This document shows, piece by piece, positions 6,972 to 62,473 of a DNA stretch of 64,000 nt. Made by a program: the position numbers and the translations under genes. The DNA lies in the IMG/VR virus record IMGVR_UViG_3300042541_001760, positions 62,001-126,000 of that record; one strand, given 5' to 3'. How positions within the stretch are numbered: the first letter of the stretch is position 1; every line of letters starts with the position of its first letter. The notes beneath the pieces are model-generated. The model saw only the letters and a program-made list of their open reading frames with translations. It ran no database searches and was not told the DNA's origin.

Positions 6972-7805
6972 TTAAAATGGACTATAAATTTTATTAGGTT
7001 TCTCCTCTTTAAATTGGTGTTTGGTGTAACCCAATGATTCTATCATTTTTTTACCAACTTTGATACCATTGTAGACATCCTCAACCACCACATATTCATT
7101 TGCGGTGTGGTAATCGTAGTACCCAATGGAGATATTGATACAAGAAAAATCAAAAGATTCTTTAAGAGCGTAAACATCGGTATAAGGGTGTGAGAAATAT
7201 TTTAGTTTATCAGGAAAACTTTCAGTTAGAACTTTATCACATTCTTTAAAAAAGTCAGTCCGTCTGTCAAATAATGTTGTTCCCCAACATCTTTCAGTAA
7301 CCATCCAATTTTCGGGGGCGTCGAACTGAATTGCGTAACCAACATTTGTAAAGAATGATTTGTCGGCTTTACGAGACCCGTGACATCCTGTTTCTTCAGA
7401 TACAAAGAACGCCGCCTTTAAGTTGGGTAACTCTTTTAGTAATTCTAAACAAGCATAGACACCACACTTGTCATCACCTCCAATACCTGTAGGGTTTCCT
7501 TCGTTATTATACGCTTTTAGGGATAACTTAATTTCACCTTGAGCGTTTTCAAGTTGTTCTTCAACGACATTGATTGAGTCCATATTATGAACCGTATCAG
7601 TGTGTGATACAACACAAGGGAACATAAACCCATTAGGTAAATCACCGGTTTGTTTGGTGGCATAAACATTAAGATGTTCATCCACCGTATGGTCAATGTT
7701 GTTTTCCGTTAACCAATCAATAAGAAATTGAACCATCTGTTCTTCCTTATAAGTTTTACTTGGTACTGACAATACGTCTTTTAGTAATTGATAATTTCTT
7801 TCCAT
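6972..7805 (-). CDS. M20/M28-family zinc peptidase
   Basis: SHTDTV, GIGGDDKCG, SEETGCHGS, YHTANE. Confidence 0.8.
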   Translation of the reverse strand: MERNYQLLKDVLSVPSKTYKEEQMVQFLIDWLTENNIDHTVDEHLNVYATKQTGDLPNGFMFPCVVSHTDTVHNMDSINVVEEQLENAQGEIKLSLKAYNNEGNPTGIGGDDKCGVYACLELLKELPNLKAAFFVSEETGCHGSRKADKSFFTNVGYAIQFDAPENWMVTERCWGTTLFDRRTDFFKECDKVLTESFPDKLKYFSHPYTDVYALKESFDFSCINISIGYYDYHTANEYVVVEDVYNGIKVGKKMIESLGYTKHQFKEEKPNKIYSPF

Positions 7806-7841
7806 ATGACAAATATATGAAAAAGTTTTGATATATAAAAT

Positions 7842-22644: not shown

Positions 22645-22728
22645 TGATCAGGACAGGATTCGAACCTGCTTTAGGGCTTACGACCTATGATAATCTATTT
22701 ACGACAACAACCATGTCGCCACCTGACC
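22645..22728 (-). ncRNA. tRNA-like RNA lacking a canonical anticodon arm
   Basis: GGTCAGG/CCTGATC acceptor and GCAGG-TTCGAAT-CCTGT T-arm intact; no 5-bp/7-nt anticodon arm. Confidence 0.65.
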
Positions 22729-22948
22729 ATTTCCCCACCTTGAGATTATTGGTGAGTAGTTATTTCGGTTTTTTCTTCTGTTCCAAAACCTGTGAGGCGT
22801 CCCTCGTGAAAACAGTCAATCCTTACTTGGAAGCTAGCGGATAAGCTAACTTTGACTCCAATGAGTAGTCAATTAAAGCTGATACTACCAAACACTTACC
22901 TATTGTTTAAGTCTTAAGTTAAAGACTCTGAGTATCTCTTACTCATTG

Positions 22949-23036
22949 TGGGTAGAGAGGGACTCGAACCCCCGATGTTTTGTCATATGACCTTTGATCT
23001 ACAATCAAAGCCGTTCGCCGCTACGGTAACCTACCC
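22949..23036 (-). tRNA. tRNA-Tyr (GTA)
   Basis: GGGTAGG/TCTACCC, TTTGA-TTGTAGA-TCAAA, long variable arm, T-arm. Confidence 0.88.
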
Positions 23037-24820: not shown

Positions 24821-24839
24821 TGTTATGGGGTTTTTTAAG

Positions 24840-24923
24840 AGCCGAGGGCCGGATTCGAACCGGCGAGGACTTAATGTCTCCTGATTACAAATCAGGTGTA
24901 ATCAACCACTATACGACCTCGGC
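24840..24923 (-). tRNA. tRNA-Thr (TGT) with long variable arm
   Basis: GCCGAGG/CCTCGGC, CCTGA-TTTGTAA-TCAGG, GCCGG-TTCGAAT-CCGGC. Confidence 0.88.
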
Positions 24924-25275: not shown

Positions 25276-25350
25276 TACTCCCGACGGGGGTCGAACCCGC
25301 AATTTCCACCTTGAAAGAGTGGCGGCTTAAACCAATTCGCCTACAGGAGC
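25276..25350 (-). tRNA. tRNA-Glu (TTC)
   Basis: GCTCCTG/CGGGAGT, CCACT-CTTTCAA-GGTGG. Confidence 0.9.
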
Positions 25351-25404
25351 ATTTGTGAGTACAAAGATACAAAAACATTTCAAAGAACAAAACTTATTTA
25401 AAAC

Positions 25405-25436
25405 AAAAAACCCACCTCTTTTTGGGAGATGGGTTT
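25405..25436 (-). terminator. Intrinsic terminator of the putative attenuator
   Basis: AAACCCATCTC-CCAAAAA-GAGGTGGGTTT followed by TTT. Confidence 0.8.
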
Positions 25437-25459
25437 GAATATTTTGATTTACCACAATA

Positions 25460-25534
25460 TTACAACATCTCCCTTCGGCTTAATCTCTCCTCCGTTCTAT
25501 ACGTTGTATTATATGTTTGGTTTAAATTTTTCAT
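25460..25534 (-). CDS. Putative attenuator leader peptide MKNLNQTYNTTYRTEERLSRREML
   Basis: 24 codons starting 4 nt after a TACATTTG promoter; GGGAGATG at its 3' end is complementary to the terminator 5' arm. Confidence 0.7.
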   Translation of the reverse strand: MKNLNQTYNTTYRTEERLSRREML

Positions 25535-25583
25535 ATGACAAATGTAGTAATAATAATATATAAGTATATAAGTTTTTAAAAAA

Positions 25584-26087
25584 TTATTTTAACATCTTAA
25601 AAACCTTGATGAAGTATAAAGGATCCTTCATTTCATACCTATATACGTTATCCGTAACCAAGTTCTCAATTACTATTGTCTTAGTGGGATATGTAGATAT
25701 CAGTTTAGTTTGGTATGGTGTTAACCTAAACCAAGCATCAATTTTACAACTCATTCTATTACGAATATTGTAAGTTGAGAATGAGTCAACAGAGGTAACA
25801 AATGTAAGCTTACCAGAGTCACTACAATAGTGCTTATCTTTGTAAGTAACCTTAAATTCTTGAATAAACTGATACTCTTTACTCATATCAGCATTATCAA
25901 TAACAGGTTGTACGACAATTAACGAATCCTTATGAATATAAGGAGCAGGTTGCTCACCATATGGTTTAATGTCCTTATTCTCATATGTTTTTATAAATTC
26001 ACAATGAGAGCAAGGTTCATTTTGACCAATTGGAGCAAAGGACAGAAAAAGCATAAGAATCAACGAGGTAATTATGGATAGTTTCAT
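25584..26087 (-). CDS. Hypothetical exported protein
   Basis: Signal peptide MKLSIITSLILMLFLSFA. Confidence 0.65.
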   Translation of the reverse strand: MKLSIITSLILMLFLSFAPIGQNEPCSHCEFIKTYENKDIKPYGEQPAPYIHKDSLIVVQPVIDNADMSKEYQFIQEFKVTYKDKHYCSDSGKLTFVTSVDSFSTYNIRNRMSCKIDAWFRLTPYQTKLISTYPTKTIVIENLVTDNVYRYEMKDPLYFIKVFKMLK

Positions 26088-26280: not shown

Positions 26281-26778
26281 ATGGAAAGGGTTTTAGTATT
26301 AAATTCGGATTATACCCCTCTGAACGTAACTACTATGATCAGAGGATTCAATTTGGTTAATAAAGGTAAGGCGGAGATTCTAAAGGCAGGAGATAAACCC
26401 ATATTAACAGGAGAACAAACATTTACAAGACCCTTAATTATAAGGTTATTTACTTATATTAAATACAGAGTTAAAAATCTTAAAGTTAGTAGAAGTCGTT
26501 TATATAAAAGAGATGGTCATAAATGTTCATACTGTGGGTCACCAAAGAATTTAACAATAGACCACGTAATACCAAAATCTAAAGGCGGAACAAATAGATG
26601 GACTAATTTAATTACCTGTTGCGGGTCTTGTAACAGGAAAAAAGGTAACAAAACACCCGAAGAAGCGGGAATGACATTAAACATAATACCATATGAGCCT
26701 TCATTATTTTCGGAGGTGTTTCACAATTCAATTGAAGCGGTATGGAACGAATTTCAAAAAACAATGGGTTTCAAATGA
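26281..26778 (+). CDS. HNH endonuclease
   Basis: RDGHKCSYCG..LTIDHVIPKSKGG..W.NLITCC..CN.KK. Confidence 0.9.
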   Translation: MERVLVLNSDYTPLNVTTMIRGFNLVNKGKAEILKAGDKPILTGEQTFTRPLIIRLFTYIKYRVKNLKVSRSRLYKRDGHKCSYCGSPKNLTIDHVIPKSKGGTNRWTNLITCCGSCNRKKGNKTPEEAGMTLNIIPYEPSLFSEVFHNSIEAVWNEFQKTMGFK

Positions 26779-29318
26779 AAAAACTACTTATATCACTTAA
26801 TTTAATATTACTTTCGTTTGTTGGGTTCTCCCAAAATGATTGTATGGGATTTCAAAGTTCGATTGTTAATCCCTTACCTGTTGGTGGGGGTTATGCTCCC
26901 GGAACTGTGGTTCAATATTGTGTTACATACAATAATTGGAATACTAATTTAGGTGCTAATTGGTGTGAAGGATTTAACATTACAATCGGACCTGGTTGGG
27001 TACCGGGTTCAATAACTTCAGTAACCCTACCAAATAACTTAAATGGTGGAAATGGTCAATGGTTGTGGGTTCCGGGGACATTTAATGGAGATCCAGGTTC
27101 ATCAGGTGGTGCGGGAAATAACTTTGGACCGGGGTTCTTTTTTGATGAAGATAGTGATGGTATAACTAATAATGATTGGGGTGATTTTGGAACAGGTCCT
27201 TGGACTTTTTGTTTTAGTGTTACGGCAGGCGCGGTGGCAGGAACATCATTATCTTTACAGGTCTCACCCGTTAGTGATGGGTATGCCGGAAGTTGGGGTA
27301 ACGCAGGGTGTAACGGAGAATATCAATATCAATTATCACCCGGTAGTACGGTATTAGGTTGTATTGTTCCACCTCTTGTAACACAATCATCAGTTACCGA
27401 CGCTACTTGTAGTGGATTCGCTGATGGATCCTTTAATGTTGTGGGGTCAAATGGGGTCTCTCCTTACACTTATTATGTAAATGGTGTCGTAACACCAATG
27501 CCTGTAAATAATGTCCTTGCGGGGGTTTATGTGGTGTCTTGTGAAGATGATAATGGGTGTGTTAGTTTACCAATCAATGTTACCGTGGGTGAAAACACAA
27601 CGGTGGTTAATAATACCTCACAATTACAAGATAATGTTTGTTTTGGGGAATCCAATGGTAGTTTTACAATAAGTTCTGTTAATGGTTTATTACCTTACAC
27701 ATATACCTTAAACGGTGGTTCAAATAACACGGGAACATTCACGAACTTAACCGCAGGAAATTATGTTGTAAATGTTTCGGATGATAATGGTTGTAATACC
27801 AATCACAATGTAACTATAACCGAACCAACCCAACTAACAAACACGATACCCGTTATAACTGACATTGATTGTTTCGGAAATACTAATGGAACAATATCGG
27901 TTACCGCAAATAACGGAACACCACCTTATATATACACCTTAAATGGGGTAACAAATAACACAGGTAGTTTTACAAACTTGGGTGCGGGTACTTACTCTAT
28001 GGATATCACCGACGATAACGGTTGTCAGATAATCATCCCAAGTATTGTTGTGTCAGGTCCGGCTCAACCATTACAAGGTAATCTATCTACGGTACAACCA
28101 ACTTGTTTTGGGTATTCAGATGGGTCAATATCGTCAGTTGTTATTGGTGGAACTCCTCCATATACTTATCTTTGGAATAACTTACAAATAACGTCACTAA
28201 TAACCAATTTATCTTCGGGGTGGTACCAAGTTGTGGTAACTGACGATAATCTTTGTCAGACAACATTAACTCATCAATTGGGTCAGCCTATGAGGATTGA
28301 TTTAACTGGTATTAATTCAGAGGTTATTTGTTTTGGTGAGGATGTTTACATATCGGTTAGTCAGATAAATGCCGTTACACCATATAATATTGTTTGGGCT
28401 AATTCAGTAAACGCAACAACTAACAATAATGATATTTGGGTTGTTCCCCCATCCGATGTAACTTATACATCAACACTAACTGATAATAATGGTTGTATGG
28501 CAACACATAATTTTAATGTTACTGTAAATCCATTACCTGACCCATCCTTCACCCAAAGTGATATAACAGGATGTAATCCCAAGTGTATTGATTTCTCAAT
28601 TATAAACCCTAACCCTAATTATATTTACGATTGGACTATGGGTACTGGATCTGATCGTAGTGGTGACATCATTAAATATTGTTATCCTATGGATGGTACC
28701 TATGATGTCAGAGTAATTGCCACCACAAATTTGGGATGTAAGGATACCTTATTTAAACCTAATCATATTATAATTAATCTGTCACCTGTTGCTCAATTTT
28801 CAATATCACCTGAGAGTGTAACTGACATTATGTCACCTTATTTTGAATTTGGTAACCTATCTAAGGACGCGATGTCATATTTTTGGAGTTTTGACGATTC
28901 TCAGACATCAATAGATGAAAATACCGAACATACTTATATTTCTCCTGGTGAGTATTGCGTTAAATTAATTGCCACCACAACTTTTAGTTCGGGAATACCA
29001 ACTTGTGTTGATTCTATTATTAATTGTGTCACCATTAATCCATTATCAGTTTTATATATACCAAATGCGTTTACACCAAATGGTGATAATACCAATGATT
29101 ACTTTTATGTTAGTTCGTCAAGGATATATGATTATCATTTAACAATTTATAATAAGTGGGGTACTAAAATATTCCAAACATACGATTTGGATGCCACTTG
29201 GGACGGTACTTATGGTACAAGTATTGTAGAGGATGGTGTGTATTCTTATTTTGTGAGTTATAGGGATGTGGAAATGAGAAAATACGCAAAAAACGGTACG
29301 TTAACTGTATTAAAATAA
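26775..29318 (+). CDS. SprB-repeat/PKD surface protein with T9SS type-B (gliding-motility-associated) C-terminal domain
   Basis: Signal peptide MKKLLISL, repeats C.G..NG.I......G..PY.Y, PKD motifs, C-terminal IPNAFTPNGDNTNDYF...IYNKWG...WDG. Confidence 0.85.
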   Translation: MKKLLISLNLILLSFVGFSQNDCMGFQSSIVNPLPVGGGYAPGTVVQYCVTYNNWNTNLGANWCEGFNITIGPGWVPGSITSVTLPNNLNGGNGQWLWVPGTFNGDPGSSGGAGNNFGPGFFFDEDSDGITNNDWGDFGTGPWTFCFSVTAGAVAGTSLSLQVSPVSDGYAGSWGNAGCNGEYQYQLSPGSTVLGCIVPPLVTQSSVTDATCSGFADGSFNVVGSNGVSPYTYYVNGVVTPMPVNNVLAGVYVVSCEDDNGCVSLPINVTVGENTTVVNNTSQLQDNVCFGESNGSFTISSVNGLLPYTYTLNGGSNNTGTFTNLTAGNYVVNVSDDNGCNTNHNVTITEPTQLTNTIPVITDIDCFGNTNGTISVTANNGTPPYIYTLNGVTNNTGSFTNLGAGTYSMDITDDNGCQIIIPSIVVSGPAQPLQGNLSTVQPTCFGYSDGSISSVVIGGTPPYTYLWNNLQITSLITNLSSGWYQVVVTDDNLCQTTLTHQLGQPMRIDLTGINSEVICFGEDVYISVSQINAVTPYNIVWANSVNATTNNNDIWVVPPSDVTYTSTLTDNNGCMATHNFNVTVNPLPDPSFTQSDITGCNPKCIDFSIINPNPNYIYDWTMGTGSDRSGDIIKYCYPMDGTYDVRVIATTNLGCKDTLFKPNHIIINLSPVAQFSISPESVTDIMSPYFEFGNLSKDAMSYFWSFDDSQTSIDENTEHTYISPGEYCVKLIATTTFSSGIPTCVDSIINCVTINPLSVLYIPNAFTPNGDNTNDYFYVSSSRIYDYHLTIYNKWGTKIFQTYDLDATWDGTYGTSIVEDGVYSYFVSYRDVEMRKYAKNGTLTVLK

Positions 29319-43701: not shown

Positions 43702-44096
43702 AATTTTACTGTAAATCTATTTTTCATCATTTCTAATTTATCATCAGGAACTCCGTGTTCGTTTTTACCTCCGTGACGATTTTCTGTAATAATGGAAGTC
43801 ACGCGATAACCTAGTTCTTCTGCCATCTTATAATAATCGTCCATCTCCCATTCTTGTGTAAATGTGTTGGATACCACAACAGGTGAATGTTCGTATTTCA
43901 TAAGATGCGCAACTTCTGCCTTACACCAAGAGTGAGCGTCTTTTATTTTTGAGGGGTCAAAATTATAGTTACCCTCTCTATCAACAAAAAACATATCAGC
44001 TTCCTTATGACAATAATCCTTATCAACCAATAATTTAGCCAATGTTGATTTACCTGACCCAGGTAGTCCACGAAGTAATATCAGATTTTTTTCCAT
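43698..44096 (-). CDS. P-loop kinase (polynucleotide-kinase / AAA_33-like)
   Basis: LLRGLPGSGKST, EAD, VVVSNT, HGVP; start moved to MEKNLI. Confidence 0.8.
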   Translation of the reverse strand: MEKNLILLRGLPGSGKSTLAKLLVDKDYCHKEADMFFVDREGNYNFDPSKIKDAHSWCKAEVAHLMKYEHSPVVVSNTFTQEWEMDDYYKMAEELGYRVTSIITENRHGGKNEHGVPDDKLEMMKNRFTVKL

Positions 44097-44148
44097 ATCA
44101 CAAATGTAGTGTTTTTTTAAACACAAAACAAAGTATATTTATAAAAAT

Positions 44149-58177: not shown

Positions 58178-58828
58178 TTAAAACTCAAAATCAAGGGTAA
58201 TTGGGTCATTTTGATACAAATAATCCTCACCAAGGCTAGATGCGTTGATAAATGTCATTCCATCCATCTCTTTCATCCCATACGAACTGTGAATGTGCCC
58301 AAATGCGTGTACTTTTGGCTTGATTTCCATTACTCTATTGTATAAATCCTCACAACCTACTCTTTCGCTTATATTGGTAATGTCTAAAATACCCAATAAT
58401 GGTCCGTGAGTAATCAAAATATCGGTATCTTGGGGTATTCTTTCCCATTTTTGAGCAATATCCCAACCACGATTAACATTAAACGCCCAATTATGAAACC
58501 GAGGTTGCCAAGGAGACCCGTAAATCTTGATACCATCAATGATTATACTATTATCCTCCAAATAGGTGACACTAGGGTAGTTTTTAAGTAGTTCAAAGCA
58601 CTCCTTTGGGTTATCTTGGAATCCGAAATCGTGATTTCCTGCGATGAATATCTTATATTCATACCCTTTTATACCATCAAACCAACCAAGGAAGTTTTCA
58701 ATCTCATTCTTATAACCCCGACTACTGATATCACCACAATGTATGAGGATATCCCCACCAGGTAAGTCATTTGTTAGATGCCTATGTTTGGTGTGGGTAT
58801 CACTTATGAATGTTATCTTCTTTTTCAT
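58178..58828 (-). CDS. Metallophosphoesterase
   Basis: SDTH, HCGD, AGNHD, THGP, FGHIH. Confidence 0.85.
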   Translation of the reverse strand: MKKKITFISDTHTKHRHLTNDLPGGDILIHCGDISSRGYKNEIENFLGWFDGIKGYEYKIFIAGNHDFGFQDNPKECFELLKNYPSVTYLEDNSIIIDGIKIYGSPWQPRFHNWAFNVNRGWDIAQKWERIPQDTDILITHGPLLGILDITNISERVGCEDLYNRVMEIKPKVHAFGHIHSSYGMKEMDGMTFINASSLGEDYLYQNDPITLDFEF

Positions 58829-58852
58829 ACTACAAATATAGTGTTTTTTTTG

Positions 58853-59518
58853 TTAATCCCACCAATGATCCATCTTTCGTTCAAGTATTTTAAACAAAAG
58901 TTTCTTAGCCTTAATGTGATTATGTAATCCAACTCTGTGAGGTATAATAGATTTATCTGACTCCTTATCTTTGAACTTGTTTTTAACAATTCTTGTTGAG
59001 TTTTTGTAGATATTTAAGTAATCCTCAAAATTTTCTGATATTATATCAGATTTAACTTCATACAACTTACCACCTTTTTCATCCTTACGATCAACCTCAA
59101 CAAAATCAAATGTTGATTCGTAATAATCAAAATACTCGGTATTATAATATTCATTTTTGACTTTATCAATCAAATTCAAAACTATTGTCATATCGCGATT
59201 ATTAATATCAACTCCTGAATGTCTATTATTTGACACAAGATACTCTCTTTGGAGATATATTTTTCTTTCGAGTACGGTGTATATGTATGAGTGATCCCAA
59301 TTCCTGTCTTTCCAAATGGTTGGAATCCAATAATACAAATTAGCGAATCCAACTCCGACATCATTAAGGAAGTTTAGTATTTTCATCAAGAAACTACCGA
59401 TACTTGTATTACGATACTTATCGTATATAAACCAATTAAGTAATGTTATTGGGTTGTAGGTCTTTCTACCGAATGCTGAATCTTTTGGTAAGATTAAAGG
59501 TTTATATTTATTTTCCAT
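58853..59518 (-). CDS. Hypothetical phage protein
   Basis: IWKDRNWDH...HWWD; start moved to MENKY. Confidence 0.7.
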   Translation of the reverse strand: MENKYKPLILPKDSAFGRKTYNPITLLNWFIYDKYRNTSIGSFLMKILNFLNDVGVGFANLYYWIPTIWKDRNWDHSYIYTVLERKIYLQREYLVSNNRHSGVDINNRDMTIVLNLIDKVKNEYYNTEYFDYYESTFDFVEVDRKDEKGGKLYEVKSDIISENFEDYLNIYKNSTRIVKNKFKDKESDKSIIPHRVGLHNHIKAKKLLFKILERKMDHWWD

Positions 59519-59548
59519 AGCACAAATATACATAAAAATATTTAATAA

Positions 59549-61918: not shown

Positions 61919-62005
61919 ATCTATAAATATCTGGATATTTGTGTTTAGGTGTGCTAATATATAATTAAATTTTGAATAGTAAATACTTTTTATTACATTT
62001 GTCAT

Positions 62006-62473
62006 ATGAATATTTTCGTTTTAGATTGGGATATTAAACAGTGCGCAAAAGACCATTGTGATAAACATTGCGTTAAAATGATTCTTGAGACCGCTCAATT
62101 ATTGTGTGGTGTTCATTGGTTGTTGGGTAATGACGCTCCATATAAATTGAGTCATAGGAATCACCCGTGTTCTATATGGACAAGAAAATCATTAAGTAAC
62201 TATCTTTGGTTATGTGAATTAGGTTTAGAGTTATGTAACGAGTATACTCGTAGGTATGGTAAAACTCATAAGACTAAACAAATACTTGAATGGTGTTTAG
62301 ATAATAAACCTCAAATCCCTGATATAGGTTTTACAGAACCATCATTAGCAATGCCTGACGATTATAAAACTAATGATGTTGTTGAATCTTATAGGAGATA
62401 CTACGTTAATGATAAGAAAGAAATTGCTAAGTGGAAAGATGGATATGTTCCAAGTTGGTTTAAATTATCCTAA
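62006..62473 (+). CDS. Pyrimidine-dimer DNA glycosylase (DenV-like family)
   Basis: MNIFVLD...HCDKHCVKMILETAQLL, HPC..W, EYT.RYGK.H, AMPD. Confidence 0.8.
   Translation: MNIFVLDWDIKQCAKDHCDKHCVKMILETAQLLCGVHWLLGNDAPYKLSHRNHPCSIWTRKSLSNYLWLCELGLELCNEYTRRYGKTHKTKQILEWCLDNKPQIPDIGFTEPSLAMPDDYKTNDVVESYRRYYVNDKKEIAKWKDGYVPSWFKLS

Follow-up and report, generated by a model that had tools for sequence, protein, structure and literature searches.

A candidate leader-peptide attenuator at the head of the tRNA gene array of a large uncultured phage

Introduction

Phage tRNA genes are now seen both as supplements to codon usage and as a way round host defences that cleave tRNA (PMC10264068, PMC11555353), while almost nothing is known about how their expression is controlled. 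Leader-peptide attenuators are established regulators of amino-acid operons such as trp, his and thr, in which a stalled ribosome decides between a terminator and an antiterminator. In one stretch of phage DNA, a short open reading frame (ORF) followed by a terminator-like hairpin was noticed directly before a group of tRNA genes. This raised the question whether the tRNA genes of a phage can be placed under translation-dependent attenuation, with the leader codons matching the tRNAs downstream.

In this study, we analyzed this locus within the whole stretch of 64,000 nucleotides (in the following, the window). The original prediction described a promoter, a leader ORF, a terminator, an antiterminator pairing, a boxA-like motif and the downstream tRNA genes, and inferred that the phage senses the loss of specific tRNAs and reads through into replacement tRNA genes. 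The described sequence features were confirmed, with the exception of the label boxA-like, and were found to be statistically exceptional. The interpretation was supported only in part, as detailed below.

Results

Anatomy of the locus

All features are located on the minus strand. The following elements were found:

25546-25539 (-), P1, a Bacteroidota-type -7 promoter box TACATTTG (TAnnTTTG)
25534-25460 (-), predicted leaderless leader ORF of 24 codons, ATG at 25534 and stop codon TAA at 25462-25460
25516-25484 (-), codons 7-17, in which a stalled ribosome is predicted to free the antiterminator; 10 of 11 codons are Thr (ACA/ACG), Tyr (TAT), Arg (AGA) or Glu (GAG)
25521-25501 (-), region 1 (anti-antiterminator strand), pairing with region 2 in the predicted fold of the free RNA
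25473-25451 (-), region 2, comprising the last codons of the ORF, the stop codon and AATATTG..TGGT, pairing either with region 1 or with region 3
25446-25424 (-), region 3, AATATTCAA..CATCTCCC, pairing with region 2 (antiterminator) or with region 4 (terminator), so that the two helices are mutually exclusive
25436-25400 (-), intrinsic terminator with an 11-bp stem (25436-25426 / 25418-25408), a 7-nt loop and a T run
25388-25377 (-), conserved 12-mer GTTCTTTGAAAT between the terminator and P2
25369-25362 (-), P2, a second TAnnTTTG box (TATCTTTG) with a predicted start about 7 nt before tRNA-Glu
25350-25275 (-), tRNA-Glu(TTC), the first gene of the array
25007-24933 (-), tRNA-Arg(TCT)
24923-24839 (-), tRNA-Thr(TGT)
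23220-23148 (-), tRNA-Cys(GCA)
23036-22948 (-), tRNA-Tyr(GTA)

The codons of the ORF are as given in the original prediction, and GGGAGATG at 25473-25466 is the exact complement of CATCTCCC at 25431-25424. The terminator hairpin spans 25436-25408, has 11 pairs of which 5 are G-C, and is the only strong terminator-like site in 3.8 kb. In the minimum-free-energy fold of the free leader, ACCA pairs with UGGU, AUA with UAU, and UACAACGU with AUGUUGUA, and this helix forms together with the terminator. The leader folds better than shuffled sequences (z = -2.6). A scan with Rfam at E-values up to 10 gave no match of any kind on 25400-25546, and no tRNA signal was found on the leader, ruling out a degenerate tRNA.

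Genomic setting and related loci

The window is part of a 261-kb IMG/VR viral contig. Its genes include SprB-repeat/CHU_C (type IX secretion), peptidoglycan hydrolases, a ClpB-like ATPase and an HNH endonuclease, and its promoters are of the Bacteroidota TAnnTTTG type. It is therefore a large phage that probably infects a Bacteroidota host. A search of GenBank phages with the region and with the neighboring protein revealed no cultured relative; only tRNA hits were obtained.

For comparison, relatives were collected starting from the 172-aa gene located upstream (stop at 25584), for which 51 homologues were found. Searches with their alignment, together with exact look-ups and DNA patterns, brought in loci numbered L001 to L067. 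Three of these (L062-L064) came from a pattern search in species-representative bacterial and archaeal genomes and were chance matches with neither terminator nor tRNA. Look-ups of four further contigs yielded no new leader variants. The 230-nt stretch from the stop of the 172-aa gene to tRNA-Glu was recognizable in about 25 of the collected metagenomic phage loci, of which 17 have distinct leader sequences. DNA identity was 72-97%, while the neighboring protein falls to 48-54% identity. An nhmmer profile of the leader detected one copy per locus, always between the 172-aa gene and the tRNA array, and no second copy in the window or in any locus.

A predicted leaderless start

Conservation of the ORF, covariation of the pairings, folding with a ribosome footprint and the match of leader codons to local tRNA content had been named in advance as tests of the idea. 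With respect to the ORF, the ATG is invariant and lies exactly 4 nt after the TAnnTTTG box in 18 of 18 homologues, including L049, in which the sequence upstream of the box is unrelated. In Flavobacterium psychrophilum this box occupies -12 to -5 (PMC9723704), which puts the predicted start of transcription on the A of the ATG at 25534 and thus predicts a leaderless mRNA. The same layout is used by real genes of this phage: TAnnTTTG-N4-ATG occurs 9 times in the window against 1.7 expected, none of 100 shuffles reached 9, and several of these sites are the starts of long ORFs at 7805, 58828 and 62006. The leaderless start was not stated explicitly in the original prediction and strengthens the case for translation.

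The frame is open in all homologues, while the other two frames carry stops. The stop codon keeps its position but alternates between TAA and TGA, and the one length change inside the ORF is an in-frame insertion of 3 nt in L015 and L049. The Thr, Glu and Ala codons of the core vary at the third position, but the overall third-position bias of substitutions is weak (9 of 18 variable columns in codons 1-16), so that we do not rely on this codon-position test.

Predicted ribosome-dependent switch

To test the behavior of the leader in silico, each leader was folded with its 5′ part masked as by a ribosome footprint. For the free RNA, the predicted terminator probability was 0.91-1.0, and a 1:2 helix was present in the minimum-free-energy fold of every homologue. 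For the window itself, the probability was 1-5% with the A site at codons 7-12, 26-67% at codons 13-17, and 100% from codon 18 to the stop. In the clade to which the window belongs, values of 0-0.13 were obtained for codons 7-12. In a second sequence class (class B, see below), values were 0-0.03 for codons 7-13, and the low values extend to codon 13 or beyond. In most leaders resembling that of L007, values were 0.25-0.7 for codons 7-17, with 0.9 at codon 15, and 0.4-1.0 in L008, L050 and L060; in L007-like leaders the predicted antiterminator only ties with the terminator at equilibrium. With the A site from codon 18-20 to the stop, the probability returned to 1.0. The stop codon lies inside region 2 in all homologues, and region 2 is covered by a ribosome at the last codons or at the stop.

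Changing the footprint by 3 nt in either direction only shifted the profile by one codon. None of 300 dinucleotide shuffles of the upstream part reproduced the drop in terminator probability, for any of three different leaders. As isolated hairpins, the antiterminator scored -16.2 kcal/mol against -14.6 kcal/mol for the terminator in the window, and -16 to -19 against -12.7 kcal/mol in class B. The behavior is that expected of an attenuator of the trp/his type.

Correlated changes in the pairing regions

The homologues fall into two classes that differ over the whole 3′ half. Class A has GGGAGATG in region 2, CATCTCCC in region 3 and an 11-bp terminator, while class B has GGGGTG(T)GG in region 2, CACCCC in region 3, a shortened region 4 and a 9-bp terminator. 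Thus, the strand shared by both helices changed, and both of its partners followed. All 9 stem pairs of the terminator that were counted are paired in all 17 distinct homologues. Counted by alignment column, 85.7% of the antiterminator cells are paired against 42-58% when the partners are slid, and the 1:2 helix plus the terminator has 76% paired against 33-47% slid. The apical antiterminator pairs at alignment columns 89-96 and 90-95 covary, with three and two pair types. However, most of this signal rests on few independent events, and the 1:2 helix uses different registers in different clades, so that its column-wise covariation is modest, although every class has its own 1:2 helix. L006 differs from the window by CAA>CAG in region 1 together with UUGUGG>UUGCGG in region 2; the two changed bases pair in its predicted fold, which looks compensatory.

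Leader codons and tRNA content

In the window, 10 of the 11 codons 7-17 are read by the Thr, Tyr, Arg and Glu tRNAs of the phage. This is the only one of about 128,000 eleven-codon stretches in all six frames of the window that reaches 10. At the amino-acid level, none of 15,075 such stretches in 45 long ORFs reaches it, and the binomial P is about 2e-6. In relatives, the conserved core is T-T-(A)-D-R-T-E and the first tRNAs of the array are Glu-(Ala)-Asp-Arg-Thr, with a match of 7 of 11 and 9 of 13 codons; here P is about 2e-3 to 5e-3 each, and these values are not independent.

Whether the codons track tRNA content across lineages gave mixed evidence. Two correlated events support it. The window clade lacks tRNA-Asp and the Pro-Asn-Lys-Ile-Ile block of tRNAs, and relative to all other clades it has Tyr for Asp, Thr for Ile and Glu for Ala in the sensing codons. 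All three changes go to amino acids whose tRNAs this phage carries, and two go away from amino acids whose tRNAs it lacks, Ile and Asp. In L049, tRNA-Ala is inserted after tRNA-Glu, and an extra Ala codon precedes the Asp codon. On the other hand, four lineages lost a tRNA but kept its codons. L057 has no tRNA-Thr, L018 has neither Arg nor Thr, L014 has no Arg, L050 has no Glu, and L010 has a truncated Glu; all keep the corresponding codons. Furthermore, the Thr codons vary among ACA, ACC, ACG and ACT, and the added Ala codon is GCC; a U34 anticodon would read ACC, ACT and GCC poorly, in the case of GCC that of tRNA-Ala(UGC).

A second promoter and a clade without the leader

A good TAnnTTTG promoter box, P2, is conserved between the terminator and tRNA-Glu, being kept as TAACTTTG or TAATTTTG in relatives, so the tRNAs do not depend on read-through. 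P2 and tRNA-Glu are also present in a sister clade (L011, L019, L020 and L037) that lacks P1, the ORF and the terminator and in which P2 is the only promoter. In about half of the relatives, a protein gene is inserted before tRNA-Glu; in L002, L005, L006, L008, L050, L057, L058 and L061 a DUF2927 lipoprotein gene lies between P2 and the tRNAs. Thus, the element can only modulate tRNA transcription, not gate it.

Discussion

Proposed mechanism

Taken together, the element is real, conserved and statistically exceptional, and it is most likely, with moderate confidence, a ribosome-mediated transcription attenuator with a leaderless leader peptide that adds regulated read-through to the tRNA array. 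In this model, host RNA polymerase would start at P1 on the A of the ATG and produce a leaderless mRNA for a 24-codon peptide. If no ribosome is present, or if the ribosome runs through to the stop, region 2 would be paired with region 1 or covered by the ribosome, the terminator (regions 3:4) would form and the transcript of roughly 130 nt would end. If the ribosome is held up with its A site at codons 7-17 (Thr, Arg, Glu, plus Tyr here or Asp in relatives), region 1 would be covered and region 2 free to pair with region 3, so that the polymerase would read on into the tRNA genes, in some relatives with a lipoprotein gene first. This read-through would add to the constitutive transcription from P2. 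The parts, their conservation, the alternative pairings with their covariation and the codon bias come from sequence and computation, whereas translation of the ORF, stalling, the dependence of read-through on both, its effect on tRNA levels and the physiological signal are inferences, drawn for a phage and a host that are uncultured and without transcript, ribosome or reporter data.

That the signal is the loss of specific tRNAs, as originally inferred, is plausible but unproven and can only be proposed tentatively. In this view, the phage measures its own decoding supply: the sensing codons would co-evolve with the tRNA genes just downstream, and a shortage of exactly those tRNAs, caused by a codon-usage mismatch with the host or by host anticodon nucleases, would stall the ribosome and switch on extra transcription of replacement tRNAs. 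This would be a homeostatic counter-defence circuit built from a leader peptide. Asp>Tyr in the leader where tRNA-Asp was lost, the added Ala codon where tRNA-Ala was gained, and Ile>Thr where tRNA-Ile is absent fit this view. Likewise, it is not established that read-through matters for tRNA output, considering P2, the inserted protein gene and the sister clade.

Alternative explanations

A less likely alternative is a self-contained small gene, in which P1 and the terminator delimit a transcript of about 130 nt acting as a small regulatory RNA and/or encoding a 24-aa micro-protein, with the tRNAs driven only by P2 and the alternative pairings serving RNA stability or a function in trans. The own promoter and strong terminator about 130 nt apart, the conserved P2 directly downstream and the dispensability of the element in the sister clade are in line with this. 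Also, the first 5 codons and AGAACGGA are conserved at the nucleotide level, which is unusual for leader peptides, and the RNAalifold consensus consists of the AAUAUU hairpin plus the terminator. However, a plain small gene does not need its own 3′ codons to be complementary to the 5′ arm of its terminator, nor this complementarity to be rebuilt when the terminator changes. The C-terminal 8 residues are entirely different between the two classes, which argues against a conserved functional peptide. The codon-tRNA match is not explained by this reading, and the element always sits at the head of the tRNA array. For a stand-alone small RNA gene, the conserved reading frame with its in-frame indel is also not expected.

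Somewhat less likely still, the attenuator might read general translation capacity or amino-acid supply (Thr, Arg or Glu starvation, or a global slowdown as with ermC-type leaders) rather than the level of the phage's own tRNA species, the link to the adjacent tRNAs being only that both concern translation. The third-position variation of the Thr codons, the GCC codon and the lineages that kept codons without the corresponding tRNA support this, while the three replacements in the window clade, the L049 event and the extreme enrichment for the phage's own tRNA set speak against it. A chance ORF in the 3′ untranslated region of the 172-aa gene is very unlikely: although the hairpin is the first terminator after that gene and a 24-codon open frame is not rare in DNA of about 32% G+C, the conservation of ORF, ATG, promoter spacing and stop position across 17 distinct homologues, the absence of the switch from 300 shuffles and the unique codon enrichment disfavor it.

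Comparison with known systems

The leader-peptide attenuators of amino-acid operons in E. coli (trpL, hisL, thrL, leuL, ilvL) likewise have a short ORF followed by three overlapping pairing options (1:2, 2:3 and 3:4, the last being the terminator), a stop codon inside region 2, regulatory codons clustered where a stalled ribosome covers region 1, and the terminator as the default when the RNA is not translated. In contrast, the genes downstream of the element studied here are tRNAs in a phage instead of biosynthetic enzymes, the mRNA is predicted to be leaderless, the regulatory codons are a mix of 3-5 amino acids rather than a run of one, a second promoter follows the terminator, and there is no sequence or Rfam relationship. 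Among the features we could test, the layout departs from trp/his/thr-type attenuators only in this internal promoter.

Closest in logic is the pheST attenuator, whose Phe-rich leader peptide controls phenylalanyl-tRNA synthetase and thereby feeds back on a component of the decoding machinery for the amino acid it senses. It controls a synthetase and senses charging of one tRNA, while here the controlled products would be the tRNAs themselves, and several of them. T-box riboswitches also use a terminator/antiterminator choice to couple tRNA status to expression of translation-related genes, but bind uncharged tRNA directly without translation; their specifier loop and T-box sequence are absent here, and no Rfam T-box match was found. 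T-boxes belong mainly to Firmicutes, not Bacteroidota. In F. psychrophilum, leader-peptide attenuation is reported as likely (PMC9723704), with the same host phylum and promoter type and short peptides translated ahead of terminators. Those candidates lie upstream of chromosomal amino-acid biosynthesis operons, and none is reported before tRNA genes or in a phage.

Our literature searches revealed no described attenuator of phage tRNA genes, and we found no described example of translational attenuation controlling tRNA genes, of a feedback loop on tRNA supply in a virus, or of a leaderless attenuator in a Bacteroidota system. If the element works as proposed, it would be a leader-peptide attenuator whose sensing codons match the tRNAs it gates. 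It is 190 nt long and has natural sequence variants as well as a natural deletion clade.

The conserved 12-mer between terminator and P2

The motif GTTCTTTGA at 25388-25380 had been described as boxA-like, a reading for which no support was found; the motif varies (C/A) and the window holds one exact copy of the 12-mer. The 12-mer, GTT(C/A)TTTGAAAT, resembles the E. coli consensus of rrn-type boxA, a transcript site bound by NusB-NusE in Nus-factor antitermination, only in part. Reading GTTCTTTGA as the -33 element of P2 also fits poorly because its TTTG lies only 11 nt before the -7 box. The 12-mer is the same in all 12 homologues of the intergenic alignment that reach it, while the 13th, L015, ends inside it, and it reads GTTATTTGAAAT in L057, L058 and L065.

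Putative leaderless transcripts

The TAnnTTTG promoter box followed by exactly 4 nt and an ATG was found nine times in the window, whereas only 1.7 occurrences were expected. The nine sites comprise four further sites and the following five:

7803-7817 (-), TAnnTTTG-N4-ATG
58826-58840 (-), TAnnTTTG-N4-ATG
61994-62008 (+), TAnnTTTG-N4-ATG
44094-44108 (-), TAnnTTTG-N4-ATG
59516-59530 (-), TAnnTTTG-N4-ATG

Several of these sites are the starts of long ORFs. Therefore, the phage seems to use leaderless mRNAs often, although such transcripts make up only about 4-5% of mRNAs in the Bacteroidota species studied so far (PMC9723704, PMC7366714).

Region between the terminator and tRNA-Glu

Two features were observed between the terminator of the leader and tRNA-Glu, in the vicinity of P2, the second TAnnTTTG box:

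25377-25388 (-), conserved 12-mer GTT(C/A)TTTGAAAT between the terminator and P2
25361-25352, position corresponding to the insertion point of an additional gene in related phage loci

The 12-mer is conserved in every relative that has the leader. It does not sit at the usual -33 distance from P2. In about half of the relatives, an insert of 0.6-0.75 kb carrying a DUF2927 lipoprotein-like gene lies between P2 and tRNA-Glu. In the related locus L002 it is located at positions 363-1108, and it was also found in the loci L005, L006, L008, L050, L057, L058, and L061. One of the relatives bearing this insert is 97% identical to the window.

Variation of the tRNA array

The tRNA array is very plastic, as seen by comparing the related loci L007, L013, L049, and L051 with the window at 25215-25194 and 24243-23260. 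Relatives carry 9 to 22 tRNAs in the same place, while the window lacks tRNA-Asp and the Pro-Asn-Lys-Ile-Ile block. Also, the tRNA-Glu gene itself varies among related loci: L010 keeps only its 3′ half, in L050 a DUF559 endonuclease gene lies where tRNA-Glu would be, and L014 has a Glu-like tRNA with an abnormal anticodon loop.

Within the window, three positions of the array concern individual tRNAs or tRNA-like sequences:

24839-24923 (-), tRNA-Thr(TGT)
22948-23036 (-), tRNA-Tyr
22645-22729 (-), weak tRNA-like match just after tRNA-Tyr

The tRNA-Thr(TGT) is 85 nt long and has an extended variable region, which is unusual for a Thr tRNA. Relatives also have tRNA-Asn of 82-83 nt. The weak tRNA-like match was obtained with the tRNA-Sec model (29 bits, below threshold) and was not called by ARAGORN. 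It may represent a degenerate long-arm tRNA of the Leu or Ser type.

Genes neighboring the 172-aa gene

Distant relatives of the 172-aa gene lie near a tRNA with the anticodon CTA, which ARAGORN calls 'Pyl'. This tRNA was found at the following positions in three loci and is a possible amber-suppressor tRNA in those phages:

L024, 6041-6112 (-)
L036, 6024-6095 (-)
L047, 6041-6112 (-)

In the window, two overlapping genes were observed:

26281-26778 (+), HNH endonuclease gene
26742-29318 (+), gene for an 858-aa protein with SprB repeats, PKD domains, and a CHU_C type IX secretion signal

The HNH endonuclease gene overlaps the start of the 858-aa protein, and the pair is conserved next to the 172-aa gene in relatives.
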